Assembly (NCBI GenBank): GCA_977020255.1
Contig: CDROCS010002540.1
Coordinates: 496,001-560,000, forward strand
Origin: Obrimoposthia wandeli
Taxonomy: Eukaryota
Reading direction: 5' to 3'
Length of the DNA stretch: 64,000 nt
Made by a program: the position numbers and the translations under genes
Shown: positions 16,441 through 64,000 of the stretch, piece by piece
How positions within the stretch are numbered: position 1 is the first letter of the stretch
Layout of the letters: the number at the start of each line of letters is the position of its first letter
The notes under the pieces: generated by a model
The model's input: only the letters and a program-made list of their open reading frames with translations
What the model was told of the DNA's origin: nothing
Databases searched by the model: none

Positions 16441-16946
16441 TAATTAATTTTATTCCATATTTAACCTTGCTTTCAAGGATTTTATTTTGATAAAAAACAA
16501 TTAATTTCTTCTAAAATTATTCAAAACCTTATCCTAACACTGGTATTAAATATGTATTAAGCCAGCTTCCAAAATGTCTTGGACCTTGAAGGCGAGGCAG
16601 CTAAAAATGTAAGGTCAAGGTGCAAATTGTATCTCGTAAAAAGTGTAAAGCGCAACATATGAAACAAATGGTACCGTTACTAAAATTCCGACGAAAACGG
16701 AGCATTTGGAAATGGTATATCGATTGAATACAGATACATTTCTAAGATTTTTCAAGCGCTTTTTTAAGAAGATTAGATATACCAGTAATCATTATTTTCG
16801 ATAACGGAACCAATTTCGTGGTTTCTGTTAGAGACATCAAAGATAATAAGATTAATTGTTATGCTGTAAAGAGAGAATTTGTGAGAAGCCCAATCAGCTG
16901 GATTTTTAACCCCTATTATTTCGGTAGAGATTTTGAGATAGTATAA

Positions 16947-17367
16947 AATATCAAGTTTTTGCAATGAAAACATTCTAATTAGCCGCGGCTTGTTAACATG
17001 GTGCGGTTTATTGTATGGAATATCAAGGTTTTGCAATGAAAACATTCTAATTAGCCGCGGCTTGTTAACATGGTGCGGTTTATTGTATGGAATATCAAGG
17101 TTTTGCAATGAAAACATTCTAATTAGCCGCGGCTTGCTAACATGGTGCGGTTTATTGTATGGAATATCAAGGTTTTGCAATGAAAACAATCTAATTAGCC
17201 GCGGCTTGTTAACATGGTGCGGTTTATTGTATGGAATATCAAGGTTTTGCAATGAAAACATTCTAATTAGCCGCGGCTTGCTAACATGGTGCGGTTTATT
17301 GTATGGAATATCAAGGTTTTGCAATGAAAACAATCTAATTAGCCGCGGCTTGTTAACGTGGTGCGGA
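16947..17367. repeat. 72-bp tandem minisatellite, about 5.8 copies
   Basis: tcaag recurs at 16951, 17023, 17095, 17167, 17239 and 17311. Each unit contains the palindrome AGCCGCGGCT. Confidence 0.97.
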
Positions 17368-17551
17368 TAGTAGCGCGAAAACAGGGTAGGCGAATACGAG
17401 TGTGTCTATTTCGGTAAAAGTATCGTGATTTGGCGAATAGAGGCTGGAACTCCGTCGCCATCAAAGAAGTTTAATTTCATTAGTGGTATATAAAATATAA
17501 TTTCTAAATAGATAACAAAATTTTGAATTTAACGAATGTTACTAAAATTTA

Positions 17552-20358: not shown

Positions 20359-21635
20359 CAGGGTGGTCCGTAGAAAACCAAAGGATTTAAATAAATTTAT
20401 TTACATTTATAATAAATGTTCAAAATGTTTTCCTTCATTATCCCGACATGTTTGAAGACGTTTTATCCATGATGATGTAGCTTTTCGTATGGTATCCAGA
20501 CTAATATTATCCCAAGCTTGCGTTAAAAATAGTTTGAGTTCATCGATTGTGGAAACCTCTTCGCGTACTAACTGCAATTCATGTAGCACTATTCCCCAAA
20601 TAGCATAGTCCATAACATTTAAGTCTGGACTTTTTGAGGGCCAATCAAGTGGCATAATTAAACTTGGTACATTCTCTTGAAGCCATGAAATAGTCGCATT
20701 GGCTGTGTGTGCTGTAGCTCCATCTTGTTGCCAAATCCACGATTCACCATCCATTACGTTGATTATGTCTTGGAACATTGGGGGGCACATCTCATTACGA
20801 TACACATGCTGATTAACTGTTTTCTTTTTTCTTTTTGAAGAACCAACATTATTCGGTACTTCAGCGAAGCCTTCAATAAATCTTAGTTGTGATTTTCCAT
20901 GCCACGATACTGCACCATAAATCATTATTGATGGCTGCTGTCGATCAACTTCAACAATTAATTCTTCGTTTGGAATATCGGTTTTCACCGTAACTTCTCT
21001 GTATATGCGTTCATTTTGACTATTTATTGGAGGAGAGATATTGAATGAGGCTTCATCAGAGAACCAAACTTTTTTCCATAAATCCTCATGTTGGAAACGT
21101 TCTAGCAAGTTAATTGATTTCAAGTTTCGAGCTTCTTTGTGACGTTCTGTCAGTTTGTGACATTGTATACGTTTATAACATTTTAGAGAACATATTCGTA
21201 ATTCTCTAATTTTTTAGCAATTTGTCTTTGGCTGCTATGCCTATGACGAGGACTGCTTACAGGGGTTACAGCCAGTGCTTTTATTTCCTGCTTCATTGGA
21301 GTAGTTATTATTTTTAAACTTCCTGATCCTTTCTTTCTTTTTTTAGCCATCGCTGCGCCTTCCGTCTTCAACCGAACACATGCTGCATAAAACTGATTTT
21401 CAGTTATTTTACTAAAAAACTGGGGTAAAATGCTTTTACATTTTTCAAGTCCCCACTTAGGATTTTCTTCTTTAAATAAAATAATTACTTGCCTTTGAAA
21501 ATTAGAAATTTGTGGCGTCATAATTTAAATCTAATAAAATTTTAATATTTTATAATATTTAAAACTTACATTTATTGAAAATAGATAAAAATAATTCTTT
21601 TAAACAAATCCTTTGGTTTTCTACGGACCACCCTG
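20359..21635 (-). mobile_element. Full-length Tc1/mariner element, maT (DD37D) family
   Basis: Perfect 30-bp TIRs (CAGGGTGGTCCGTAGAAAACCAAAGGATTT) at 20359-20388 and 21606-21635, TA on both sides. Motifs WFSDE, QQDGATAH and WPSKSPDLNVMDY, with 37 residues between D2 and D3. Confidence 0.97.
20407..21521 (-). pseudogene. maT transposase with one frameshift near 21190-21210
   Basis: ORF 21521-21183 (HTH). A second frame opens as LKCYKRIQCHKLTERHKEAR and runs into ORF 21123-20407. A short deletion in the second helix region is likely. Confidence 0.9.
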
Positions 21636-23908: not shown

Positions 23909-25398
23909 CAGGGGTGGGCAAACTTTTCAGTTCAAGGGCTACATTCAGAAATTTCAAAAATTTAAAGGGTCGCTATAACTATAATAGTATATTTAGTTAA
24001 AATGAAATAAAAGGTTTTTAAAGAAAAAAATATACATTTTTTTTATTAATATTTTAAAGTAGAAACTTCACATGAAGTACATTTATTTGAAAAACAAAGT
24101 AACTCAATAAGTAACAAAACAATGTCAATGAGAATGATGCATCTGACTGCAGTCTTTTACCAGTTTGTTAAAATCAGGTGTCAAGTTGGTTGTGCTGATC
24201 CTTAACACTGACTTAAGATTTGAATCGGTGAGAAGAGATCTGTTCTTTGACTTGTTAACTTTCATTATAGAGAAAGTCTGCTCACAAATGTAAGTTGATG
24301 TAAACAACACAAGCATCTTTCTTGCAAATTTATTCAGAGTTTGAAATTTTTCTGAGGACAGAGATGCATAAAACTCGACCAGTGTTTTACTTTCAAACAT
24401 CCTCTTTAAAGAGTTGTCAGCTAGTAAATCAATCAGTTCCATCTGCAGTTCTTCAGTAGCTGTTTCAATGTCACAGGTAAAAGGTGAACTGAGCAAATCG
24501 AACTGTTCTTCAATTGCCTTGAAATCAGCAAATCTTCTGATAAATTCCTCTTTTAAAGCCATCATCTGGGAAGAGTACTTGTCTGATAATGCTTGCGTAA
24601 CCGCTCGTGTTTTCAACAGAGGAAAATGAACAAAGTTTTGCTCATTCAGCTGCTTGGCTAAAAGTTTAAGTTTCAATTGAAAGACTTTCACTTCCAGGTA
24701 TAATTCATGAGCAAATAAACCTTTGCCTTGTAGTTTTGTGTTTAACTCATTCAGCTTTTGCATTATGTCCACAGCAAATTCAAAATCACAAACCCATTCG
24801 TCACTCCATTTCCTTTGAAAAGTCACAAGAGATTTCTTTCATAGTAAAAAACATGACAATCTCTTCTTTTAGGTCCCACACCCTCTTTAGTACCTTTCCC
24901 ATGCTTAACCAGCGGACATTTGTGTGGTAAGCACATCAGTAAAATCTGCCTCGTTGTCTTCCAAGAAACTTCGGAATTGCCTGTATTTCAGTCCCCGCGC
25001 TCTTATTGAACCACTGGATCCATAACATGTTTTAGTTCTAAAGAAGACTTACAGAGGTTTTCTTGATGTATAATACAATGAAAAGACAACGCACTGTGCA
25101 GTGGAAAATCTTCTTTGATTTGATAATTCATCAACTTTACAAGGCCAGAATGTTTACCTGTGAGTGAAGGAGCACCATCAGTTGTAATACTTGCTAGTTT
25201 GTACAGGCTTAATCCAGACCTTCAATAAAAGTTAAAAGAAAACAGTTTATAACATTAAAAAAATTTCAAAAATAAAAAATCTCAAGATCATCATTTATTC
25301 AATTTCTTCACAATTTATTTTTGTCCCAAAATAACATGCGTATATAACTTGGCGGGCCGCATAAAAACCTTTGGCGGGCCGTAGTTTGCCCACCTCTG
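23909..25398 (-). mobile_element. hAT element (Buster clade, SPIN/OC1/GTF2IRD2-like), internally deleted
   Basis: 16-bp TIRs CAGGGGTGGGCAAACT and AGTTTGCCCACCTCTG (1 mismatch); 8-bp TSD ttctagac/atctagac. SITTDGAPSLTG, FHCIIHQENLC, VRWLSMGKVL, and STYICEQTFS dimerisation domain. Several frameshifts; N-terminal half absent. Confidence 0.95.
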
Positions 25399-30479: not shown

Positions 30480-30650
30480 CTAGACCCCGTATTTACTGTC
30501 TAATCATCCAAGTGTGACATCATATGATTCTGTATTAATCCCAACGGTTCTTTTCCCAGATATTGTTACTACATTATTTATTAAAGCGTAAAATGTGGCT
30601 TTCCAACTCTCGAATTCATAAGAATTTCCATTAAAACTAGGAAGAGTCTA
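30480..30650 (-). mobile_element. BEL/Pao gag (DUF1759-like) relic
   Basis: PSFNGNSYEFESWKATFYALI...ESYDVTLG*LDSKYG. Confidence 0.6.
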
Positions 30651-31337
30651 CCTGTTTAATTGTCCACAAGCTCTATGTACACAGGGGTCAAAATATTTCT
30701 TGCGAGTAGTTATAAGTCTCAACTTTTATGGTTAAAAATGTTTAACTTAATTTTTTACTTGAAAATATTAATTATTGGAGTGTACATTTGAAGTTAAGTA
30801 AAATATTAACATATTTGGAGTTATAAATGATTTTATTTTAATTTTGATAAACATCTTAACAATTTAAATTATAAAATTATAAAATTATAAAATAACTAGA
30901 GTGCTTTAGAAATATTTATGAAAAAAATTATTATATTTATTAATTAATTTTTAATGAATTTAGAAGATTAGACGATTTAGTAGGGAATTATAAATATTTC
31001 ATCGTAGACCTTCAATACTGTATTGCTCGCCAACCTCGGATTAACTTAATTTCGTTGTAGATTTTTCTACCGAAAGTCATTTTTATTTCTTATTAAGTTC
31101 ATCATATAAGGTGGTTACTTCACAGACATCATTTCACAACTTCAAATTACAACGTTTTTAATAAATAGATTTAAATACAAATATCTTGTAATATATCAAT
31201 TTAAAACATGTTATTAGTTTAATATGTTACTCAATAAAAATGAAGCTATTTTTCATTTTTTTAAATGTTGTATTTTTTAAGGGTTGCTTAACTTTAAAGC
31301 CAAAATGTTATTTTGTAATAAATAATAGCATACAATC

Positions 31338-46930: not shown

Positions 46931-47730
46931 ATGACTAAAATGAAGGGACTTGGCCTTTGTCTTTAGGGATAGAAAAGGAGTCGTCACAAAATCATAGGAG
47001 TCATTAGGAAACACTACTAAAGAATGAAATTAGCGTCTGAAAGGTTGAAGGATTAATTGAGAGAAAAGTGACTAAGAAAATCGTTGAGATGATTAAACAG
47101 TTTTTCCCGTACAAAACACGACCTCACTGATCTTACCTAACACAATAATTTATCATACACCCATTATTCACCTAAAATAATCATTGAAATGAGAAAATTA
47201 ATCAATGCAATTAATGGTGCCATTAAATATTGGTTTGGAAATATGTCAAAGGAGTTTTTTTGACAAAGATATCAAATAACTATTAAAAATATGTAAAGAA
47301 TCAAAGAAACTATTTTACTTGTTAAAGAAATTCTGATGATGAACAAATGTGGCCGTTGTTGTTTTTTTGTACGTTTAAATCGTCGAAAAACATACAAAGC
47401 CAGCCTATATTTTAAGGCTAAAAATATAACTATTATATTCGGAAGAAAATTAGTCGATGCAACCAAGAATTGAATATTTTATCACTAAATAATCATGGTT
47501 CGTAATTTTTTCATAACATATTTAATAATTTTAGAACATAATTTTTCGTTTATAATTGTCAGTAGTTGAATTTTGTCAAATGTTTATATTATTATATCTG
47601 TGAATCGCCTCATATTAAATAGCCTGACACATCGGAAAGTTTGCCGACCCTTGCTACAAATGCTCACCAAAAATCATACGACACAACATCCATTAGGGAC
47701 AACATTCCCGACGGGAAAATAAGCCGAATC

Positions 47731-47829
47731 TCACTGGTCAGACTTGTGTCGAGCAAAAGACATGTCTTCGTAGTACCTTTCCTCACCCAGCCTCACAAAG
47801 TTCATCGTTGAGCAGCAGAGCATCTTAAC
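47731..47829 (-). CDS. M6: M6 terminal exon
   Basis: CTACAG acceptor, phase 0. VKMLCCSTMNFVRLGEERYYEDMSFARHKSDQ-stop, with NF in the same register as PLP LTFMIAATYNF. Confidence 0.85.
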   Translation of the reverse strand, partial: VKMLCCSTMNFVRLGEERYYEDMSFARHKSDQ

Positions 47830-50800
47830 CTGTAGCAACAAATACAATTTAGAACAATCACTCTGTACAACTTGGTCACTTTACTTAAAAACTTAATGAA
47901 CATTCAGAACTACGTAAAAAGATATTTCCTCCTAAGTCTAAAAATTTTAAAACCAGTTCCAATAAATTGTTCGACTACAAATTCTACTGGTATAAATGCT
48001 CCATTTACGTCTTAATACAAATGCATTGTTTTTTAATTTAATATGTGTGAGTTAAAAAATGAAGTATTATTTCCCTGTGAAATCATTAAAAAAGTCCGTC
48101 TATTATGCATTCACTTTTACACAGATGTAACTTCAAATGTGTTCGAAGATAATTCAGGCATAATTCTATTGATAAATAAACACCACTCATTGTTGTGCAG
48201 AGGATATATATATAGGTCATTATTGAAAAATGTAAACATACCACACAATCACACATTCACCAGCTTGCTGATTACCTAAAGACCCGTAGGTCCGTAAACC
48301 ACAGTTTACACAATCTATTACAAAATGGGAAAAAGTATATAAGGGGACTCAAATTTAAATCTAAAGGTTTTGATCACCTTGTTAATCATAAGGTGCATTT
48401 GTATATAAAGTAATAGTCTGTACAAGATGCAATTTTTAGCCACTTAAGCAGACATAAATCCAGGGGTCTACTTTTTATGTTTTTTAAAATTTATGTGGGG
48501 TTGAATACTGAATAAACGTCATATTTAATATATTAGAACCACATGATATTAATTTTAAAAAAACAATTATTTCTTGAAAATAATTTTATATAATGAATTA
48601 CAAAACAATTTTAGCGTACCGCAGTTTTGAAAGCTGCTTTTTAGATCATTTATTATTTATAATTAGTATAATTAGTGCTCATAAAATAAGATGTAACAAT
48701 TTTGAAATCATAAAATAAAAAATAATTTTTTTAAAACTTCTCAGAAATAAACCTGGCTTTGAAATAATTAAATATTGGGTGTATTTTTGGTTATAAGAGC
48801 TATTATTATGTTACATTTTCAAATCGGCTATTTACATAAATTTACCTGCATTATAGTTCTCTATAGATTAAGGGATTCTACTTGAATAATCCCAAACGGA
48901 AATATTATTGACTTTTAACCATTCTTGTGTAGATTTTGAAGTTCAATTGTCATGCTGAAAAATATGCTTTTCATTTTTTTATTTCTCAACAAGTCTTGAT
49001 AATCTGTGTTTCAAAATTTTGATGTTGATAATTTAGTCAGGTTGCAAGAAATTATGTTATTTTTCTTTGACAATATTGCTTCAAAGGAAATTTAAATGAT
49101 TGCAGTCGATAAGGAGTAAAGTTGATAATTACATTCACACGCAGTCCCTTATTCATTTAATCCTTCAAATGAGAAGGTAAAAATTGTTACTGGTGCAGAT
49201 CAATTATTTCATTTAAATTTTGAAACTCAACAAAATCGTTTCCCATGCAGTCTTAGTTAAATATTCCAACCCACTCTCGTAACACAACAAAACGATTGAC
49301 AATTATAATCGAGTATTATTCAAATACGAAAGGAAATTAAAGAAAATTGCACCCTACAAAGGTAATATTCAAATGAAGAAAAATATATTTTACCACAAGC
49401 TAACAGAAAAATAGAACACCGAAAATTCAATGTTGAAATATACTTCTGACGTTACTGTTGTTACATTGACATAATATAGCATACAAGGTTATGCAATTCC
49501 TTCAAAAGAAGATAAACAGTTGCGTTAAAATTACTTGGCGTTCATTGAGCAAAAATTATTTACTATTAATATTAATTTACTTTCGATACATAATTTGGAC
49601 ACAATGTAGATTTCTATTTGAAACGTGTTTAAGTTGTGAAAGTTTGGGAGTGTGGAAATAAACGTTACTCACAAATCCCAATATAGCCGTTATTGATCCT
49701 CCTAGAGCGACACCGGCCAAAATAATTTCAGTATTGTCTGTATTGTCTGTATAGTCACCAACAGTTATGTTAACGTTGACAACTGCATAACAAAGTGTGG
49801 CCAAACTAAAAGAGGTAATTGAATAATTCAAAAACTTTTACTTCGTATTAAACTTAAATTTTGTGTAAACATAGTAAAACTTTATCACAATCAGAAATAA
49901 TGCACTTATTCAGACGTTTTTCAAAATTGGAAAATATTTTCTTAAGAATGTCAGGAGTTACATCATTAAAGACTTCGGCAATGAATTTCTTTGGTTCATT
50001 TCTGTTGTTGGGATTTCGACGGAATACATTTTAGCGACTTCATTAGGAAAGGAGTTAGGGAAAATAGAATTATTTTCCTTAATTTTTTCCGTAAGCTATT
50101 TTACAAATGTTCCTTAAATAAATCTCCAAATGAAATTTAATAAATTTATCTTTGGTATTCATAAACTGTCCCTATCTAAGGCAATTACTTATAACATATT
50201 TTTAATGAAAACGTTAAGGGAACAATGAAGCTATTTGGAGATGGTAATAATTTTAAGTTAGATATATTTATTTAATTGTGATTTATTTCAATAAGTTTAA
50301 TTAATCGTTATAATGATAATATGTCGTATAAAAATTATATAAGTTTCCTTAATTAAAGAAGACAATTTGGAAATCTAAACATTATTATTCTAAAACATTA
50401 TAAGCCAAACATAATTGAATTCTACAATATCTTAGGAATAAACTAGAACATAGTATTCAAATCAATTAAAATAACACAAAACATGAAAATCTTATCACAA
50501 CGGAAAACACAAAAATTGTAATTAGATTAATTATCTTAATTTTAATTCTGTCAACGAAATATACTTTTTGTTTCAAAATATATTTCATTTCTGGTTCTAA
50601 ATTGACTGCTTTCAATATAATTTAAAAATAATAAAATAATTAATAAAAAATGAACTGTATAACAAAATTAGACAAACATTATATTAATGTATTTTTATAT
50701 AATAATTTAATACATCTTATTTCAAAATATGATATTTTGATGGGGGTTTATTTTGATTAATTTAAAATCAGATAAACTCAATGTTTAATTGAAATCCAAT

Positions 50801-53800
50801 TATCAGTTTTGAGAACAATATTGAAAATTGTATTATTTTTACCTTTTTGTTGGGATTTTGAGTCTGAGTTGTTTTGTTTTCTGAAATTTCTTTACAGTTT
50901 CCATAGATTAAAAATACACCTTTTATTTTCGAAACAGACTTAAAGAAAACGTCAAGGACAATGTATATTACTTGAATGTGGCCCTATGTATCTCTAAAGA
51001 AAATGTCTACTATGGCCAAATTAAGCTATTGGTCCAGTATGTCCAATTCAGTATCTTAGAAATAAAGTGTCCTACAGCTGTTGTACTTATCAAAACTTTC
51101 CGTATATATTTCGGTAAAACATAAACACTGCTTGACCGGAGAATAGCCTTGAATGATTAACCAATGACATTCTCTTCAAGGGCCAAATAACATCCCTCGT
51201 AATTTAAACACACACATTTGTTTAATCGACCATTAAGCTTAACAGCTGCTTCATCTGAGAAACAATCATATTACATAAAAGCTGGATTATTGAAATTAAT
51301 TGCTGTATATCCCCACCAAAGCTCTTTCCTGCCAGGTAATCATAATCTGAAAGTTGGGGTAATGGTATCTCATGATATGTCTTAATTTTTGAAGTATATT
51401 TCAGGGTGTTTTGTACTGTTGGGTTTTTCTATTTGAAGCTCTAATTCATAATATCATTTTCCATAATAATCTATTCAGTGTCTACCCCGCGATATAGTTT
51501 TGTTGCACGCAATGTTGCATAAAAATTATTATTAATCAGGATAAAAAACTGTCCCTAAAAACTTATTTTCTGTACATGGAAAATTTGCATGCTAGATTGT
51601 GTTATTCAGGATAAATTTAAAAAGAATTTATAATAAAACCGTATCAAATTTAGTTGAGCACTCCGTTATAGTTTTGTATTTTACATTTTTCAAATACAAA
51701 GAGAAAGTAAATATATTATAGTAAAACTTGCCCGATAGCACATCCGGGTAGGCGGAAAACAGAATGATTCCAAAGCAGAAGCTCATGAAACATGTCACGA
51801 GAATCCACAAATAACTGGCCAGAGTCAGACACATAATATTCTGGAAGAGAAAAAAAACAATTAAAAAAAAGTACTAATAAAATTGAACATTTAATGAAGC
51901 CCCATCTGCTACCAATCAATACCAGAATTGAATTCAATATCCTATTTGTTATCAAAAAATGAATTCTCACAGAGAAGCCCAACTGCTTATATGATACACT
52001 CGAGCCGTGTGCAGTGAGCATTTAAACTGTGTTTCTTCTCATAAACACTCCCTGGAAATGTGTAAACGTTTATAAATGCCTTAGCTCTAATAAACACCTT
52101 TCCTAAAATCCATTATATATGGGTATGCGATTATAGTTAGGTAGTTATAAAATTGTATGGCTCCTTTTATAAAGTGAAAATTGTACTTCCATATAGATTT
52201 AAACAATAACAAATTTTAATATAATATCTCATTCAACTGGTGCTTTCTAATTTGTTTCTGTCAAATAACGTAACATAAAAAGAGTTAACTATACGATCCA
52301 AGTAAAATTAACAGCATGAGATTACTTAAAGGCACACAAAAAGTTAAATGAGATAGCATGAACCTTCAAAGTTGTTCGTAAACGTATAATAAATTGGAGG
52401 AGTAAAGTTGAAAATTTAATAAAGCAGGGAACAAGTTGCGGTGAATTCACAAAAATGAATTACCAGAGGAGGCAAAACAGTTCTTTCAAATCAAATAGAA
52501 CAATGGTTAAGAAATTGAATTTGCCCTGCGAGAGAAGAGATTACCAGTTTACAGAAAAACAATTCAACTAATGGCAATGAATTGATCACTAACGATGATG
52601 AGGAAAATGGAGATACCAAAAAAGTTCAAATCAAGTAATAGATAGTTGAATAAATTCATAAGTCATGGAGGATTTGCTGTACATAGACACACAACTGTCT
52701 CACAACAAAACAAATTTGATTTACTACATTCCAAAATTAGTAAACTTTATTTGCTATCTTGAACGATAGAGAAATATGCAACATTTGACATTTTTGTATT
52801 GGATGAAACTTCAGTATGAATAGACCAATCGCCGAAATTACTGTTGAAAAAAGGTGTAAAATCAGTTCCGAGAAAGTCAATGGGACACGAGAAAGTCTGC
52901 CTAACTTTTATTCTTACAGCCAAAGCTGTTACAACTTAAATGAAGCCCTTTGTCGTCATTCTACAACAAAAACTGAACATCAAAGAATCACCAATAGAAT
53001 GTCATGAATGATATGGTATTTACAAGCACACAAAAAAGAATTATGGATGATGATACAACAAATGATTACCTTAAAAATCTCTTTTTCTAAAATACTTTTA
53101 GTTTGGGACTATGGGAATATGCTCACAACGTTCCTAATATTGCCAATTGAACCAGAGATGCTTGGAACAACATTCCAACAAATAAATAATATCTTCAATG
53201 AAGACATAGAAGATGATTCCGATAACCACAAAATTGAATGTTTTAAGTCTGATGAGAATAAGTTTGGGTTAACACTTCTCAATGAAAACAGAAGCGCAGC
53301 TGCTGTAACTATCACACTAACTGAATAGGATAATGAATTTGAAGTTGATGACGACAGAGAGAGGGAGACTAAATATGGCTAAGATTGTGAAAAGTAGGAT
53401 TCAGATGAATCAAATTGAGCACTATTTGACATTGTTTGTAATTAGGTAAATGTTATTTGGTTATGTACCAGATATTTGTACGTAGGTTTGTAGGTACCGA
53501 GTTAGCTAAGAATCTATATCAAAGATTTGTGTTATTCTTAAACAATTTTTTTTCTTCAAATTTTTATTTGGATGGACGATAGCTAGGCAACCTAGATTGA
53601 AAATTAAATAAAAAATAGGTTAAAAACATATTAAATAAATAAATAATTTACCTCTAATAAACACCTTAAAAATTTATAAATGTTAAAAAACGACGAGATG
53701 TTTGTTATAAGAAATGCGGTATACATCTTTGGAGCAACGGTGATGACTGCGATTGGCCAAGAAATTCTCAAATAACAAACAGAGTTGTGGAATATTTGAA

Positions 53801-56800
53801 ATTTATGCTCCGATTTTTTACGACAATTTACTGATGAATTTTAAAGAAGTTCAAAAATTCAATAGCAGCTTAAGACTTTACAATTTAGGAAATATTACAA
53901 CGAATAATGGAAAACAAAAAGCGCTTTTGAACAATAAATAATAGATCTATTAGATAATAGAGCAATATTAAAATGTATTACTGTATTGTTATAAATTAAA
54001 ATAAGTTAACAGAAAAATTATCTTAACACAATTGTTTGACATATTTTTATTTAATGTTAAATATATGTCAAATTGATCATTAAAAGTTAATCCAATAACA
54101 TAGAAACATAAAAAACTCATTAACAAAATTCATATTACATCAGATAATAACATACTTTAATAACATTTTACGAATGGATTTACGAATATGAACTGTATTA
54201 TTTTATGAAAGTCACATTGATGAAGGAAAATTACAATGCGTTCCATAAAAATGGCATTTTTAAATCTATTTTACAACACAAATTAATAATCTAAATATTG
54301 CAAATTTATAATTTAGTTTCACTTTTCGATGTGATTTACCTTATTGGAAATTACAGGTTCAAGTCTTTTTGGTACCGAATTTACCACTTTTTGAAGCAAG
54401 CCTTGATTAATATTTTAACACATTATTTTATCGTCGATTTTAATGAATCTAGAGTATCTATTGATTTCATGTTTACTTTATATTTCAGTTAACCTCAAAA
54501 GAAAAAATTCATTTGGGTTGAACTCTGGGGAATGAGGTGACCACGAGAATCAGAATGATTACTTAAAATGTAACTATTTGAAAATATCTTCTTTTATAAT
54601 CCAATGGCTTCTTGTTGAAAAGTGAATAATTTCTAAGTCAGATATGATATTACATAGTTCATTAGCATTTTAAGATATTTGAATCCATTTAAAGTTCCAT
54701 TAAAATAAGTCTTATGTGAACCCACACCAATCCAATACCTTCTCTTCATGTAACGCTTTTCGTACAGTAACATTAGATCAAACACTACCTCGGATAGATT
54801 TAACTTCTCATTTTATACTGAAGTAGGCTTCATCTGTCCATAAAACATTATTCAGATGTAAATGTTGCAACGCCTATTCAGCAAACATAAAACGAGATTC
54901 ATAATCATGTGGTAATAATTCTTGATCTGTACAGTTTGAACATTTTGCGACGGAAAACCAAAGTTTTACTACAGACAACATCACTTGCAATTAATTATAT
55001 TTATGTCCAACCATTATGATTATTAATAGTTTGTAGTTTAACCACATCTTTAATTTTATCGCCAATACTTTCAATTTTAAGGAGTCTGCTACTACCGTAT
55101 GCCTGTCAAATTTCCCTAGTCCCTCATCAAACTTTTTCATAGTTCTAATGGTATGTTATTGTTGAAGCAATGTTTAGTAGAGAAATGTAAGCAGAAATTG
55201 TCTCACATGAGTAAAATATAAATGGGCAGGTTTATGTGCGGTTTCTGGAAATCATGCAACTGAAATTCAGCCATATCCAACCCCATGGGATGGAGAAGGA
55301 GCTGAATGGTTCATGATGAAGCTGGGCTTCAATTAAGAACTCCATTTCTGGATTCAAAGGAACAAAGAAACAAACATGCTTCTTATTTGCCCAAATTTCA
55401 TCTTAGACCAGGTTACTTAGAAAGTTAGATAACTTGCGTAGTCAATACAGTTTTTGTTGATAAAGATAAATTTTGTATTTCCCTTTTAGTACATTGTGCT
55501 ACATTAATCAACCAAAGGAATGACGTATATTTCATGAAATAAAACTTAGTTTTCATGTGTTATAGATGTATTATATATCTTGATTCGACTCTTTTTAGTT
55601 CCGGGAAACCCATTATCAAAATTTCTGGACATAAATTCTTATCTATACAATTTATTTACATATGTTAAAATCGATGAAGAAGATTCTTGATAATTTCATT
55701 CCGAGTTGGAATCGACCGGAATTTTTAAAATATTTCTTATACAAAAAGTAATACTTTTAATTTTAAGTAGTAAATTTAGATAACTTTTCATTATTTGTAC
55801 AAATTATAAAATAAAAAAAAATAAAAATTATTGCCAGAGATTAAATAAATATTTTACAAAATCTTATGAAAAAATTTACATTATTTTAATTTTTTAAATT
55901 TACTGGTAGAGCAATTTTATTTTAAATTAATATATGCAAAAGTAAAAAACTCACAAATACGGTGCAGCATCTTCCAATTTTAGTTTTCCGAGATCCTTCG
56001 AAGAACCGTTTGCGGTTGTAACCAGTGGAAAAGGCAGCCAGAAAATATGACATGAGGATGAAAATGACACTGGAAATGATGATGCCATAGACCGCATAGC
56101 TGATGAGATGGTTGTACTGTTTGCTGCACAGAATCATGGACAACTCCCATCATAATGACGATGATTTCTTCATACACAACAATTTTTATTTACACGTTTT
56201 CATAAGAATTAACGTGTAGAGCATCAATCTATATTTTATCAAATGAAATCGACCAAAATTGATTAAATTATGTAAATCTTGTGAAGATTTTCGGTACCAA
56301 CTTCCAAATATGTCTCATTCAACATTAGAGAGCACGAAGTGAACAATTTAATTGACAGATAAATGGTGATCACAAAGTAGTTGAAGGGGTTTAAATTTCA
56401 AAAAAGATAATGGATGGAGGCAAATGATTTATTTGTCAACATTTTTAGCATTTAAAACATTTATACATTTCTGCAGACGTTCTTGAAAAGTTAAAGTGGC
56501 ATTTACGCATATTTTTGCTGTGATATTTTGTGATTCTGATGAAATGAAATCTTTCGGCTCTTGAATGATTTTCGGTTTATGTCGGTAAATCATTGTAATA
56601 AGATATCCACACGCGGAAATGTTCAAATGAAACAGGTCAAGGTACCTTACAACCTAAATCATTGAATCACCTCTCCCGAACTAGTGTTTATGAAATGTGA
56701 TGTTAAAAATATATTACTACGAGTGCAAAATAAGCAAAACTTATCTTATTGGAAAACAGCACAGTTGATGGTATGATCAAATAAACAACGTTGTAATATG

Positions 56801-59800
56801 TTCAGATATTTGGATACATTGACATTTTCTTAAAAAGCGAAAGGGCCATAAACTCTTGTGCTCGACATCACCATCCTCACATAAACGTTTGGAAATGAAT
56901 TATACTTCTGGTATGTCTCACTTGCTTTTTCAGTGCCCCAAATTGGACAGGTGTGTCAATGGACAGCACCATCTAACCGGAATCTTCATTCATCAGGAAA
57001 AATTAAGTTTTGAAAATTTACTTGTGTTTGATAACAATTTGAACTGGAAGTGTTTTTCATGCAGTTCTTGTGTGATCTAAAGTTTGCATGTAATAGAACG
57101 TCTGAACAAAAATTTTGAGAACTCTGAATCCATTTCTTATCGATGCTTTTGGGGTAATTTTGGAGGTTCTCGTACATTTATTCTTTTATTTCGTCGTCAA
57201 TTGAGGAACATATTCATATTAATGTCACATGAAATAGTACGGAATTGTCCGAAACTTTGTCATTGATGTAGTTTTACTTTATGAAAACGTATATAAAAAT
57301 ATTAGAGCAACAACCTTGTTTCTCAGATGGTTTAGATCAGCGGTTGCCAAGCCTTTTGAAAGGCGTTCAGTAAAAAAGGAAAACTTTCGATCCAACCTTT
57401 AAAAAAATTAGTAACACATTTATATTTATTAATTCAAAAGCTTATTTTAATAAACAGTAAAGTCGTCGGCTGCTTATTGAATTTTTCAACATTGCTAAAG
57501 TTTTTATATCAATCAATAAATTGTTATAAATATTTATTGTAATACATTTTTTGATATTATGTAGGACCTTGAATTCAATTCTGGCATTGATCAGTAACTA
57601 ATGGAGCTTTATTAAATGTTACTTTTACTGTCAATAGGAAATTCACATGTATATGAAAAGGGAAGCGGTAAATTGAAAAATATGAATGTCTTTTAAGATT
57701 CAGATTCTGAGCGTGTTGATACATTGTTAATATTGCTAAGAATAAAATTGAAAATGGTTATAATAAATATTGTTCAAGGCTCCGCTGAAATTCGATATAT
57801 AGTTAATCGTCACTTTAACAAATCTATTCGTTCCAAGTGCTTGTTCGTTAAGTGGGAGTTTAATTTACATAGACGCACTGTAAAAACCGTGGTTACGTTT
57901 TCGCTGATGAAATTTGACATTAAAAATATTAATAAATGTTAAATAAGGGCAATAAAACTATAATAGAGGCATAAAAGTATTTAATACATCATAGAAATAA
58001 CAGTAAAGCAAAATATAATAATCATAGATATAAAATATATTTCCAAAATATTTACCATGCATAATAAGAATACAAATTATATGCTTCTCATTGCAGTTTC
58101 ACATTCGTCATTCGACTTCTTTCTCGTTTGTATTCTGTTCTTTTGACGTCGATGGAGTAGATATCGCATCTATTTTCTTTATGAAAAATTCATCAAGAGC
58201 TTTTTGTTTAAAATACTTTTTTATCTCTTTTTAAATTTCACGATAGCAAACTATTTATTAGTTTAAATCTGCAGCAACCTTTCTACTTCTACTTAATTAT
58301 ATATGTTTATCATTTTTTCTAATTATTTTGGAAACAACTTTGCTGCTTCATGATCGGTTCTCGCTGCTTCCCTTTGAATTTTTATATTGTGCCAACCAAC
58401 TTGGTTTTTATATTGATAAAACCAGCCATTGCTTGCAACAAATGTTTCTTCATATTTACCTTCACATTTAAATTTTAGTGTCCTTAAAAGCGATTAGGCT
58501 TTCGCGGAAATAACAGAATGTGTATGTTTAAACGTTGGGTTTGATCTGCTATCCATGCTGACAAAAATTTTTCCAATCTAGAAATTAGACTCGACACAGC
58601 TTGATTTTTGACTCTCGTAGATCGCAGGGGACAGGCCTTTGTAACTTCTTTTAGAATTTTTTGTTTATCTTTTATGATCGTACAAATCGTTGATTTTCCC
58701 ATAGAATATTTTGATGCAAGTGCTGTATTTGTTACGGCTTCTTATTCAGTTATAATATCATATTTCATTTGTAATGTTATTGATTTTTGTTTCTTTCTAC
58801 TGCGTACCGCCGCTTTTTGGGACGTTTGGGTCGTCTATTTTCTTTTTGTAAAATCTTATTTTTACTATTTTGATTATTTAAACAACTTTCAAATTCAATT
58901 TTATTTGAATTACTTTTGCGCATTTTTCTATTTTGTTTGTTAATGCGGCAGTTCATTAAGCGGGAGTTCGTTAAGTGAGGTATTGCTGTATACGAAATCT
59001 ATTTCGTTCAAAAGAGATATACATTGTAAGTTGCAGTAGAGTTTTTCACATACGTCAATCTGCGGTCAGAAAAAATAATAGGCAAATATCAAGACTGGTA
59101 TGAAATGCAATAAGTCAAAAAATGGAAAGTCTCCAAAATAAAGCTTAAAAGAACTAAGAAAATAATAAAAGAGATCCGACAAAATATCCTTAAAGTACCA
59201 TTTCAACAAGATTTGAATCTATCTTTATCTAAATATCTGTACTTGTTGAAATTTTAACAAAAGAGTATACTGCTGGAGTAATTTCATTTTTATGTTAGAA
59301 ACCAAAGAAAATTACAAGTACAAAGATATGATATTAATCGTATGAATATGGCCGCGTTGAGAAATCTGTAACTAAGGTAAATGGTTTAAAGTTCTAGGAA
59401 ACTATCGAAGATCATTCTGAAATATAATTAAATAGATTAATCATAGGAGAAAATAGATGAACAAACTTTCAGATGCAAATGTCATACAGTTGGTGACTTG
59501 AAAATAATTTCTACGAGGTATCGTTATGATGTGTTGGTACATAAATTTTATGTCCTCATAGAAATGAAAAAATATGTTTTCATAAAAACATTACCAATGC
59601 AATCATTGAATCGGTAGTTCGGGATATTCTAAAATTAGTAGTTAATATTTCGTTTGGGAATAAAAATAATGATAATAATATACTGACATTTCACAATAAC
59701 AAACATAGAATTAGGGACTAATTTAATTGTTCTCTGAAAATGGACAAATGGCGTAATAGCTGTAGTGGTCATTGAAAGTTGAGTATGACCTTGTGGAGTT

Positions 59801-60487
59801 TGTGCTATCGAAAATCAGTTACAAGTCAGTCAATCCTGATTTTCCCTAATCAATGACATAAATTGTTTACTTCATATCGACGTTGATTACTAGTTAACTA
59901 GTGTTTCGTTTGTTTATGTTATTTTGTAGATATATAAAGAAAGTTAAAACCCGATAATCACACGTACATGAAAACACCGAAATTATCAAGACGCGAATCG
60001 ACCGAAACACTGCTGGACGACCAAATGTAATTGGTGAAAATAAATAAAATAATATTTTATCATAATATTGAAAATAATTTTGTTAATTTTTCCAGGTACC
60101 TTTTTGGGTTAGTTATATTACAGATTATACACCTTACAGCGGAAAATTACGGAAACATTATATAAGTTTTTCTATGCCAAACTCTTTTAACTTTTAAGTG
60201 AAAACATTGTTCCAACTTCATTGTCTAATCTTAAAGAAAGTGAACCCTGATTTGAAAAGGTGTTCTAAACATCATGATCGGGAACAAACTGTTTGACATG
60301 ATAAACTCATTGTTTGTCTTCAGGATACAGTTGTGTCTGTGCATACTTACAGACTGCTCAGCTTCTTGGATAGCAAAATGTTGCCGCTACTGAAGGCGCC
60401 CACCCCAATCATCACAATGATCATCCCCAACAGCGAGGCAACAGGTGAGTTCCGCAAGCAGCCGGTACAGCCTTTTTCTGCAGACAT
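47731..60487 (-). CDS. M6: Proteolipid protein family (PLP/DM20/M6) tetraspan gene; at least 6 exons: 60487-60351, 56123-55955, 51840-51732, 50919-50843, 49805(or 49834)-49673, 47829-47731
   Basis: CxxCLxxxPxASL-x8-GVxxF in TM1; YAVYG...STG...GRCC; LWILVTCF; a Cys-containing second loop; NF motif after TM4. Phases agree at four of five junctions; exon 4 to 5 is unresolved. Confidence 0.85.
49673..49805 (-). CDS. M6: M6 exon 5
   Basis: LATLCYAVV...EIILAGVALGGSITAILGF, then GTGAGT donor (phase 0). Confidence 0.8.
49880..50050 (-). mobile_element. mariner-like C-terminal relic inside an M6 intron
   Basis: FIAEVFNDVTPDILKKIFSNFEKRLNKCII. Confidence 0.55.
50843..50919 (-). CDS. M6: M6 exon 4 (candidate)
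   Basis: Phase-1 start gives GVFLIYGNCKEISENKTTQTQNPNKK, ending AAG|GTAAAA. Weak A-rich acceptor and lower GC than the other exons. Confidence 0.55.
50950..51580 (-). mobile_element. mariner/Tc1-like relic filling M6 intron 3
   Basis: HYPNFQIM; FSDEAAVKLNG; EENVIG motifs. Confidence 0.55.
51732..51840 (-). CDS. M6: M6 exon 3
   Basis: Strong polypyrimidine-CAG acceptor; NIMCLTLASYLWILVTCFMSFCFGIILFSAYPDVLS; ends G|GCAAGT. Confidence 0.85.
52300..53400 (+). mobile_element. pogo (DDE_1) transposase relic inside M6 intron 2
   Basis: LDETSV...KGVKSVPRKSMGHEKVCLTFILTAKA...KPFVV; ILLVWD. Confidence 0.8.
54470..55150 (-). mobile_element. mariner/Tc1-like relic inside M6 intron 2
   Basis: LLPHDYESRFMFAE...NVLWTDEAYF...WCGFT...FQQE...WSPHSPEFNPNEFFL. 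Confidence 0.75.
55955..56123 (-). CDS. M6: M6 exon 2
   Basis: TGTGCAG acceptor fits phase 2. KQYNHLISYAVYGIIISSVIFILMSYFLAAFSTGYNRKRFFEGSRKTKIGRCCTVF, then GTGAGT donor. The 5' boundary is less certain. Confidence 0.88.
56430..57280 (-). mobile_element. mariner/Tc1-like relic inside M6 intron 1
   Basis: NLIFPDE*RFRLDGAVH*HTCPIWG; C-terminal FQERLQKCI. Confidence 0.7.
57338..57560 (+). mobile_element. hAT-type terminal fragment
   Basis: CAGCGGTTGCCAAGCC terminus preceded by GTTTAGAT. Confidence 0.4.
58130..58990 (-). mobile_element. Tigger-like pogo element, internally deleted, inside M6 intron 1
   Basis: TA-CAGCAATACCTCACTTAACGAA terminus; GKSTICTIIKDKQKI...LEKFLSAWIADQTQR; C-terminal KQKALDEFF. 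Confidence 0.8.
59690..60030 (+). mobile_element. Possible piggyBac relic
   Basis: Weak similarity only (..LSRRES.ETL..). Confidence 0.25.
60351..60487 (-). CDS. M6: M6 exon 1
   Basis: MSAEKGCTGCLRNSPVASLLGMIIVMIGVGAFSSGNILLSKKLSS, then CT|GTAAGT donor (phase 2). Confidence 0.88.
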
Positions 60488-61129: not shown

Positions 61130-62621
61130 CAATGATACGCACACGAGAAAAGAAGATGCCGCACACGGTCTTTTATTTTAGCGCACACACTTAAAATTCT
61201 TTTTGTACCAGGCACATCATTCTTTTGTTTTGGGATTTAAAATATGTAAATGATTGGTCATTTATTAAAGATTATAATTTTGTTTACTATTTATATTAAA
61301 AAATTATATTATATTATTAGATTTTATTTTTGTTTAAATAATGAACATTACTAAAAAATTATTTTTTCAAATTCTTTACTCATTATATGCCTGCCGATAA
61401 GAAACGTAGAAAAACAGCTTCGACATTCAAAGAAGATTGGCTAAAAGTAAGTGTTAAAACCGCGACACCCAAATCACATGAAGAAATAGATGTGCTATAA
61501 AAAGAAATCTTCGAATATAATGAAAGAAAAGGAATTAAATGTTATTATTGTTGTGAAGCTCAGGTTGACGGAGAATTTTCATATGGAAAAAGAGGTAATG
61601 ATGATGTATGGAAGCTTGATTTTTTGAAAAGACATTTGAAAAGTAGAGCACACTTAAATGGTGTACAAAAACTTAGAAACCAAAATCCTTTATTATCTCC
61701 TCGTGGATTAATGAAAATAATATACGAGTCTTCTGAAGTAAAAAAGAGAAATGATACTCGAGTGGATGATATTTTAATTCTTATTGACAACGTTTTGTTG
61801 GCTGTAAAAATGAATAATTCTATGCTTTCCGTACAACATATTAATGACCACATGGCTAAATATGTTCATGTGCCGGAAAATTGGCGCAGTAAAAATTATG
61901 CTTATGATTTTTTGGAATGTATTGATATTGTGATTAAGAAGGAAGTTATGGATGAAATAGCTTCTGCCAATTTTCACACGCTCACAGTGGATGAAAGCAC
62001 AGACATATCCGTGAGAAAATGTCTAATTTTATATTTTAAGTACAGAGACAATACTAACGAAACACTCTGTGAATATAAGACTCGATTTGGAGGAATAATT
62101 CAACTAAAATTATGTGACGCTACATCAATTGTTGAAGCTATAAGAGAATTTTCAGACATGGTAGATTTTGTATTTCAATATGAACAATTTTCAGAGTTGT
62201 CTAAGCTGATGGACATCGGCGGGACTTTCTTGGCCTCAAGTGTTGACTGTGAACGTGGATTCAGTTTGATGAATTCCATTAAAACCAAGCTTAGGAGTAG
62301 TTTAGGAGAAGAACATTTGGACATTCTTATGAGGACAAAGTCCTATTTACAAGATGGGTATGAAGTAGACAAGGCAAAAGTTTACAAAGCGTGGATAAGT
62401 AGGAAAGATCGACGAGAAAAGAACTAAGAAAAATGTTTTTTAAATATAAATTGGATAATGTTTATTTCTGTTATATTAAAGTATGTAGTTATATTAGTAA
62501 TATTAAAAATTGGTGTCAAAAATTTTATAAAATATAGCGCACAAAAATTTTAATTTTTTGAAAACAGCGCACAAATCTCAAGTTTTCCGCACACGAGTAA
62601 AAAGAATTAGCGGGAGCCCTG
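61130..62621 (+). mobile_element. hAT element (ZNF862/C17orf113-like transposase), internally deleted
   Basis: The right end is GCGGGAGCCCTG with gcacac subterminal motifs. The left TIR was not found. Confidence 0.8.
61387..62427 (+). pseudogene. hAT transposase reading frame with one nonsense codon (61498-61500) and an in-frame internal deletion
   Basis: ATG at 61387 is in frame with ORF 61624. TTF-type finger KCYYC...LKRHLKSRAH; LTVDESTD; SSVDCERGFSLMNSIKTKLRSSL. Confidence 0.85.
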
Positions 62622-62778: not shown

Positions 62779-64000
62779 TTAAATATTTAATGAAATTCCA
62801 GTTAAATACACTATATAATTTACATCTCTTAAATTTGACACAATATTGAATATATTTATATTTCTAATGACCACATAAGGCTTTCTATAAGGAAATTCTC
62901 CTCCTAGCGTGCGATTATATATTCCCTTTTGGTATACTTCTTCCTTTTTTAAGTTAGTAATTAAAGTAAAGACTGTAGGATGGCTCATTTGTAGCATCTG
63001 CTGAAAAGACCCATGCCATGATTCAATGGCGTTATTGGAAGTTGGTATACCACTTAAGACAGCATCGCAGGAATTCCAAGAAGGGATCGAGTATCTTGGT
63101 ATTCTCCTTTCTTGGCTTATCCCATTAATTCTTCCAATATAGTTATCCTCGAAATAATCATAGATTTCTAGTGCATTGGTTGGAAATCCATCATTATTTT
63201 TTAAATATTCGAATCCTTGCACAACTTCTTCAATTGGCAGATATGACAAGCATGTCAATAATTTAATATATAAGCGAAAATTGTTAGTATTGTTCACGTA
63301 ATCAGATTTCATTCCAATGCTGCACACTTTTCGAAAAACTGATTGGCATAGATGGAAAAACATCCTCGAATTTGTGTTTCTGGGAACACAATTCTTATGC
63401 TTGACCTAAAAGCAACTTCAAACTCGCTCATTATTGTTAATGGGTTTAAATTTGGATTTAATGTTTTAATGATTGTTAAAATTTTGGTATATGTTCTTGC
63501 ATTTTTGTTTGTGCATAGTACGTACAATGCAGGTATTACAGTTTGATTGAATAGTATATGTATGGTATAAAGCTGGTAGAAAATTATTGGAACCACCTTG
63601 AACGTGCCATCACAAAACCAATGCCTGCATGTTTCAAGCCACGTTAAGCTATCATTTGTACCGAAAATTAGAATGCGTTCATTGGAAAATACAGTATCGG
63701 AAAGAAGAAAATTTTGTGACGATAAGGATAATTTATAAGATTCGGGTAATACCAAATCCAATGCCGAACTTGGATTTACTGGGTGTTGGTTTAGTGAACG
63801 TCTTTTTCTATTGATAACTTGTTTCATATTTTTTGATCTCATAATCTTAAATTGTGCTTCTGTACTTGTAATCACTAGAGAGTTTGCTATGATTTCTCTT
63901 GGTGTCATTTGATAAGAAGTTGCTTCAATTTTAATATCATTTTTCGTTTTTAAAAATTCGATTTTAACATTATCGGGTAAGTGATAATGTTCCCCTGATA
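62779..64000 (-). mobile_element. Mutator/MULE transposase, frameshifted, running off the window end
   Basis: HYHLPD; WFCDGTFKVVP..FYQLYTIH; GCF/FHLCQ; TSNNAIESWH. The two ORFs are offset by one missing T near 63360. Confidence 0.93.

Follow-up and report, generated by a model that had tools for sequence, protein, structure and literature searches.

The window analyzed here is a stretch of 64,000 nucleotides (positions 496,001 to 560,000, forward strand, of contig CDROCS010002540.1 in Obrimoposthia wandeli assembly GCA_977020255.1), and all positions are counted from its first nucleotide. Its minus strand carries a multi-exon gene that is a divergent member of the PLP/DM20/M6 family of four-pass membrane proteolipids (Myelin_PLP, PF01275), and Table 1 lists the parts of this gene together with the other features of the window. 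A preliminary description of this DNA had proposed such a gene, and the coordinates it gave are exact to the base, with the start codon at 60487-60485 and the stop codon at 47733-47731, both on the minus strand.

Gene model and intron repeats

The simplest phase-consistent GT-AG model of the gene has five exons and 226 codons, and the frame is open in all exons. Exon G+C content is 0.39 to 0.53, compared with ~0.28 in the introns, which are 1.8 to 4.2 kb long, and 7 of the 8 splice sites are both canonical and phase compatible (in the sites given here, a slash marks the exon boundary). The ATG of exon 1 has an in-frame TGA 9 nucleotides upstream, and the exon ends at the donor CT/GTAAGT in phase 2, which joins the exon 2 acceptor ...tgtgcag/C to form the junction codon CT plus C (Leu). 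Exon 2 ends at the donor TTT/GTGAGT in phase 0. The start of exon 3 is firm, with a strong acceptor (...ttttttttctcttccag/) that has the best pyrimidine tract in the region. The penultimate exon has a strong acceptor (...acctcttttag/), with an alternative at 49782, and a TTT/GTGAGT donor in phase 0, and the acceptor of the last exon is ...gttgctacag.

Table 1. Parts of the M6-like gene and other features of the window
Feature	Position	Strand	Description
Multi-exon gene, PLP/DM20/M6 family (PF01275)	47731-60487	-	Five exons in the simplest model
Exon 1	60351-60487	-	ATG 60487-60485, C7/C10 pair, first transmembrane segment, start of small outer loop
Intron 1	56124-60350	-	4,227 nt, phase 2
Exon 2	55955-56123	-	Remaining small outer loop, second transmembrane segment, cytoplasmic loop with STGYNR...IGR motifs
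Intron 2	51841-55954	-	4,114 nt, phase 0; 5 residues past R of GR
Exon 3	51698-51840	-	Third transmembrane segment, invariant Trp as 12th residue, start of large outer loop; end at 51698 in simplest model
Stretch between exon 3 and penultimate exon	49806-51697	-	One intron, or intron with small loop exon(s)
Penultimate exon	49673-49805	-	End of large outer loop, first half of fourth transmembrane segment
Last intron	47830-49672	-	1,843 nt, phase 0; 9 residues ahead of NF
Last exon	47731-47829	-	Second half of fourth transmembrane segment, NF motif, charged cytoplasmic tail, stop TGA 47733-47731
Decayed pogo/Tigger-type relic (intron 1)	~58326-58741		Weak collinear matches to CENP-B_N (16.3 bits) and HTH_Tnp_Tc5 (14.3 bits)
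Tc1/mariner-type transposase open reading frame	20407-21123 and 21183-21521	-	Apparently intact, 238 aa, weak DDE_3 match
Open reading frame with hAT dimerisation domain	24125-24826	-	
hAT-looking open reading frame	61624-62427	+	267 aa, no Pfam match
Open reading frame beside MULE transposase	62779-63363	-	194 aa, no Pfam match
MULE transposase open reading frame	63309-63908	-	40 bits

Four hydrophobic stretches, with Kyte-Doolittle means over 15 residues of 2.2 to 2.6, are found in exon 1, in exon 2, in exon 3, and across the last two exons. These would form transmembrane segments (TM) 1, 2, and 3, encoded by exons 1, 2, and 3, and a TM4 that is split over the last two exons, in a four-TM protein with both ends cytoplasmic, an orientation inferred from the family. 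The N-terminal juxtamembrane cysteine cluster of the family is kept as C7 and C10 in GCTGCL, ahead of TM1, and the loop part of the penultimate exon contains one Cys, an NIT glycosylation motif, and a DNT-rich insert. A separate candidate for TM3, in frame 0 at ~51960-51719, was rejected: its phases are incompatible, and its Phe and Leu codons are simply the pyrimidine tract that precedes exon 3.

Read depth was determined over positions 47600 to 53400 from contigs of three DNA sequencing runs of one sample. These contigs match the region at ~45x and without indels, which makes a sequencing frameshift in the stretch between exon 3 and the penultimate exon unlikely. The last two exons have a depth of 45 to 60x, the bin with exon 3 has ~100x, and a 390-nucleotide island at 50898-51285 has 47x. 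Exons 1 and 2 each match a single place in the assembly. In contrast with the ~45x of single-copy DNA, the repeat at 48182-48375 in the last intron reaches ~67,000x, which is roughly 1,500 copies, the majority of which differ from the window at four bases. The repeat at 51868-52061 in intron 2 reaches ~12,500x, and those at 50122-50897 and 51286-51479 reach 400 to 2,200x. Intron 1 contains the pogo/Tigger-like relic, which has at least 40 copies of 80 to 88% identity elsewhere in the assembly. The introns had been described as transposon filled, and these repeats bear that out.

Relationship to the PLP/M6 family

All profile and alignment tests were carried out exon by exon. The best PF01275 locus of the assembly, on contig C663 (53 bits), was used as the query to collect 72 family members from a library of 1.84 billion proteins, and a family hidden Markov model (HMM) was built from the 24 full-length proteins among these. 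With this model, exon 1 scores 18.7 to 19.0 bits at profile positions 3 to 31 and exon 2 scores 11.6 to 13.3 bits at positions 62 to 111. They rank first and second among the 3,542 stop-free six-frame segments of the window, the next best of which scores ≤6.4 bits, and neither score was reached by any of 500 composition-preserving shuffles of the exon. For the last exon, the model gives 2.9 bits in the proper register (profile positions 213 to 238), and 1 of its 500 shuffles reached this value.

Each exon was also aligned singly by hhalign with a 20-protein family alignment. Exon 1 aligns with columns 2 to 32 (E value, 5.9e-8), exon 2 with columns 77 to 105 (2.8e-4), exon 3 with columns 115 to 166 (4.7e-3), the penultimate exon with columns 196 to 210 (0.023), and the last exon with columns 214 to 228 (0.037). 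The Trp of exon 3 falls on the invariant W120, and the end of the penultimate exon falls on an exon end of the Lottia gigantea M6 gene (...VLGL). The five peptides are collinear with the family, with a Fisher combined P value of 6e-12, which is optimistic for the three exons that had been picked in advance in the preliminary description.

The motifs on which that description relied are present in the exons. The TM1 motif CxxCL...PxASL-x8-GVxxF is found in exon 1 and agrees with the family consensus, and an NF motif follows TM4, 9 residues past the last intron. The spacing of 16 residues from GR to W (counted from the R) is also present; it had been likened to that of Drosophila M6, but it is common to 20 of 20 family members rather than peculiar to Drosophila. 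Four spacings are fixed in 18 to 20 of the 20 family members (P to G, 12; T to G, 13; R to W, 16; L to N, 9), and all four are kept here. Of the invariant residues of the alignment, P12, G25, G102/R103, W120, and N226 are retained, T88 is replaced by N, and L216 is replaced by F.

The intron positions were compared with those of the L. gigantea M6 gene, whose protein was mapped on its own genomic locus. The Lottia gene has a phase 2 intron before TM2, a phase 0 intron 5 residues past the R of GGR, which makes the invariant Trp residue 12 of the following exon, and a phase 0 intron in TM4, 9 residues before NY. The introns of the window gene have the same phases; the second and last are at exactly the same positions, and the first, in a loop whose length varies, is within ~3 residues. 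The two phase 0 introns are also present in a canonical M6 paralog on contig C141, and the place and phase of intron 2 can be deduced as well from many arthropod gene fragments whose reading continues into it. Together, these results support the proposal that the split exons belong to a hidden PLP/DM20/M6 gene.

Like the invertebrate M6 proteins (Drosophila M6/CG7540; L. gigantea XP_009060825.1, annotated "neuronal membrane glycoprotein M6-b"; and those of Priapulus, tardigrades, nematodes, and arachnids), the predicted product has four hydrophobic segments, an N-terminal juxtamembrane Cys cluster, PxASL-x8-GVxxF, TG..R, GR with W 16 residues on, and N[YF] 9 residues past the last intron. Its local identity with these proteins is only ~25 to 35%, and, unlike them, it has two N-terminal Cys rather than three, N in place of the invariant T of ATGATR, and a shorter loop (~43 amino acids in the simplest model) with both invariant Cys off their fixed positions. 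Its gene also lacks the Lottia intron that lies directly before TM4, and its 1.8- to 4.2-kb introns are full of repeats. All named relatives that were found are bilaterian (molluscs, priapulids, nematomorphs, nematodes, tardigrades, arachnids, and flatworms), and flatworm proteins of the same family include Macrostomum lignano PAA61759.1, Dicrocoelium CAH8486079.1, Echinostoma VDP20110.1, Paragonimus KAF5397510.1 ("M6-b"), and Cichlidogyrus KAL3314558.1. A word-index protein search with the C663 paralog gave no match, and ESM Atlas look-ups with exons 2 and 3 gave nothing usable.

The assembly also contains at least three canonical flatworm-type M6 genes with compact exons, at C141:118500-127500 and on contigs C663 and C4750. 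These paralogs share with the window gene the introns after GGxxxxxx and inside TM4. In contrast to the window gene, they keep the loop cysteines (with 20 residues from W to C in the C4750 copy), the Cys before TM4, and an NLT.YG motif. As modeled, the window gene has neither the NLT nor the two cysteines, whereas the paralogs lack its CxxC N terminus. The C141 copy has one intron of ~48 nucleotides with a GTCTGT donor. Beside the C663 gene lies a GC-rich tandem repeat in which several frames are open (MDEDGGRWMKMEGAGGRW...), in sharp contrast to the AT-rich DNA around it. With the window gene, these three paralogs would make at least four M6-family genes in one animal.

The human PLP1 gene presumably has introns at the same places, before FVGITYALTVVW and 9 residues before NF. 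The window gene lacks the 35-residue cytoplasmic insert specific to PLP, and the four-Cys large outer loop of the vertebrate proteins is unrecognizable in it. No link to myelin is to be expected in a flatworm. Vertebrate PLP1/DM20, GPM6A, and GPM6B belong to the same Pfam family and have the same topology (PMC7396582).

Based on the gene model, the profile ranks, the motifs and spacings, and the intron positions, we conclude that the locus is probably a nuclear protein-coding gene of a flatworm-type animal that would encode a divergent M6/PLP ("lipophilin") four-pass proteolipid paralog.

The large outer loop and competing explanations

The odd part of the gene is its large outer loop. In 20 of 20 family members, a Cys is found 20 residues after the TM3 Trp, and a second Cys precedes by ~23 residues the point where the exon with the first half of TM4 ends. 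In the window gene, position W+21 is Asp, and the sole nearby Cys, in LATLC, is 38 residues before the end of the penultimate exon. The simplest model ends exon 3 at 51698 (TT/GTATTT, phase 2) and joins it to the acceptor at 49805, which gives a loop of ~43 residues with one Cys. In the hhalign alignment, the 51698 donor is about one codon from the donor that follows NLT.[FY]G in Lottia and in the C141 paralog. Alternative ends of exon 3 are at 51742, 51732 (a perfect GC-AG-type donor, G/GCAAGT), ~51686, and 51640. G+C content falls from 0.42 to 0.27 past 51742, which counts against the 51698 end, while the exon 3 frame stays open for 33 codons past 51742, with an estimated chance of ~0.05, which counts for it. 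Either the large outer loop, through which these proteins usually bind their partners, has been remodeled, or it has not yet been correctly assembled from its exons.

Several observations weigh against the assignment as a whole. In the Pfam search, exon 1 alone matches PF01275, at profile positions 3 to 31, with 15.7 bits (E value, 0.013), which is below the gathering cut-off of 23.8 bits, and the other four exons have no PF01275 match. The locus is absent from a genome-wide six-frame profile search at an E value of ≤1 that detected other loci, so its significance rests on the local combination of evidence. The family HMM scores of exon 3 and of the penultimate exon are no better than those of 500 shuffles each. 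The invariant T88 (N in the window gene) and the near-invariant G81 (A), Y114 (T), and L223 (S) are replaced. With the exons as modeled here, neither of the two invariant loop cysteines (residues C141 and C192 of the alignment) occupies its canonical position, and the exon 3 donor is weak in every model. Finally, three sequencing runs containing the locus were found, all of DNA, and no RNA run was among them.

One possible explanation of the aberrant loop, which we consider somewhat unlikely, is that the gene is a functional M6 with a canonical Cys-bearing loop, encoded by one or more small exons missed between 51742 and 49806, so that the loop described above is an artifact of the model. The drop in G+C content at 51742 is consistent with this, as is the 50898-51285 island, which is single copy, lies between repeats, is richer in G+C (up to 0.41), and has Cys-rich frames, although the Cys richness comes partly from a TG microsatellite. 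A phase-consistent chain can be drawn from 51840-51732, with its G/GCAAGT donor, through 51257-51162 to the acceptor at 49782, and a 41-nucleotide exon at 51127-51087 would put a Cys at W+22. This genome also uses weak donors and very short introns. However, we enumerated 44 phase-compatible candidate loop exons, a number from which phase-consistent fits are expected by chance, and none of the 44 has good splice sites. No candidate restores the 20 residues from W to C or the ~23 residues that separate the second Cys from the TM4 exon end, and the 33 open codons of exon 3 beyond 51742 also argue against an exon end there.

It is unlikely, in our estimation, that the locus is a decaying M6 duplicate, a pseudogene whose outer exons look intact but whose loop-coding middle was lost to repeat insertions, leaving no functional protein. 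This would account for the displacement of both invariant loop cysteines and the replacement of T88, for the lack of a good exon 3 donor and of a convincing loop exon, and for the repeats in the stretch at 49806-51697. The per-exon HMM scores (19, 12, 3, -1, and 3 bits, compared with 12 to 64 bits in the three paralogs) and the kilobase introns, compared with the ~48-nucleotide intron of one paralog, point in the same direction. In contrast, no stop interrupts the five exon frames along ~217 codons, although we estimate that AT-rich DNA of this kind would have one stop per ~12 codons. The five-exon model closes the frame without repair, the 7 canonical splice sites are compatible in phase, and the G+C content of the exons is well above that of the introns.

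That the loop cysteines are not in place can mean one of three things: the loop has been rebuilt for different partners, the exon model is wrong, or the gene is being lost. Taken over either kind of loop, the balance of the evidence leans toward a functional divergent paralog. The more specific version of that reading, in which the protein functions without both loop cysteines and their disulfide, with a shortened loop re-made by the DNT-rich, glycosylated insert and with kilobase repeat-filled introns in its gene, is a tentative one that we regard as rather unlikely when it is taken by itself.

A chance assembly of hydrophobic frames unrelated to PLP/M6 is very improbable, and we regard it as excluded: T-rich DNA does readily give TM-like frames rich in Phe, Leu, and Ile (the frame at 51960-51719 is an example), the per-exon Pfam scores are low, and weak TM-type matches to EMC6 and FecCD were also seen, but the top two profile matches of the window are adjacent, collinear, and linked by phase-matched consensus splice sites, their scores were never met by shuffles, and two intron positions with their phases and four fixed or nearly fixed spacings are exactly those of the family.

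Source animal, surrounding DNA, and proposed role

The assembly comprises 1.35 Gb in 6,912 contigs that combine DNA of an animal with that of many bacteria, so that 1.35 Gb is not the size of one genome. It contains 98 matches to COX1 (PF00115), on contigs C506, C6384, C3914, C253, and others; most of these are full-length open frames without internal stops and are therefore most likely bacterial. Two animal mitochondrial COX1 types are present. The first is on AT-rich contigs (e.g., C109); its AAA codons align with Asn of its relatives, ATA with Ile or Val, AGG with Ser, and TGA with Trp, as under the flatworm/echinoderm code. A mitochondrial-type block with a piece of ND1, COX1, and COX3 (C109:113500-117500) occurs at least eight times on large AT-rich contigs with its frames intact when read with this code, and equally scoring copies are on C652, C736, C2590, C2533, C3456, C5570, and C626. 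These repeated blocks may be nuclear copies, concatemers, or assembly joins. In the second animal COX1 (C5352:6000-10500, on a 26.9-kb contig), AAA stands for Lys and ATA for Met, as in the ordinary invertebrate code, which indicates a second animal in the sample (prey, host, or contaminant); we take this COX1 to be mollusc-like. The best COX1 identity is ≤66%, without a close named relative.

The M6-like genes on C663, C141, and C4750 are in AT-rich DNA, and their products most resemble those of Macrostomum, Dicrocoelium, Echinostoma, Paragonimus, and Cichlidogyrus. Judged from these comparisons and from the code of the first COX1 type, the animal of the assembly is most likely a rhabditophoran flatworm, and the window contig, which is linked to it by composition alone, most likely belongs to this flatworm. 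The preliminary description had pictured the genome as that of an apparently reduced parasite, eroded by transposable elements. We found no sign of parasitism or reduction in it; its animal part is large and rich in repeats.

Outside the gene, the window is mostly transposon debris. The best relatives of the Tc1/mariner-type transposase are metagenome proteins with ≤65% identity, and a named one is from Perkinsus (47%). A tandem repeat at 16773-17370 is open on both strands, with a unit of ~31 amino acids (MFSLQNLDIPYNKPHHV...). A second gene on the plus strand at 30627-30776 was considered because of recurrent weak tblastn matches and was rejected; it has no consistent frame and scores 4.8 bits. 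Elsewhere in the assembly, the locus C759:634-3771 has, on its minus strand at ~1638-1480 and 1102-1034, a weak likeness in the same order to exons 2 and 3 (FFEGSR; CF..FCF...FY.NI..F). Its genome-wide E value is 1.7, it has no similarity at the DNA level, and the family profile does not match it; we treat it as a chance likeness or a decayed scrap, and it was not used.

If the gene is expressed as modeled, its product is predicted, by homology, to insert in the membrane like M6/GPM6a, with both ends cytoplasmic, in the four-pass topology described for the proteolipids (PMC7396582). Palmitoylation of Drosophila M6, which has three N-terminal juxtamembrane cysteines, promotes its vertex localization and, at tricellular junctions, its binding of Anakonda; mouse GPM6a carries the modification on the same cysteines (PMC11698045). 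By analogy with these two proteins, C7 and C10 are probably palmitoylated, and the protein probably acts as a scaffold that organizes the membrane, either at cell junctions or in neurons. For GPM6a, the large-loop cysteines are reported, in work cited in PMC7396582, to be essential for folding and for filopodium induction.

The family is a known one, and the window gene is a new and unusually divergent member of it that is ordinary apart from its odd outer loop. Its value as a probable bilaterian marker, which had been suggested, stands insofar as its named relatives are all bilaterian, but it adds little, since flatworm M6 entries are already public; for the same reason, and because the animal is itself bilaterian, the gene has no bearing on the origin of the family. 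It would be a fourth, very divergent M6 gene in one flatworm, compared with the single M6 gene reported for Drosophila (PMC3095610). Six-frame or Pfam scans need higher scores than its single exons give, so gene finders are likely to miss the locus. If the reading without both loop cysteines is true, this would be the first lipophilin to work without the disulfide-braced loop that GPM6a and PLP are reported to need for folding and function. If the gene is expressed, it would be a natural experiment on whether lipophilins can do without that disulfide.

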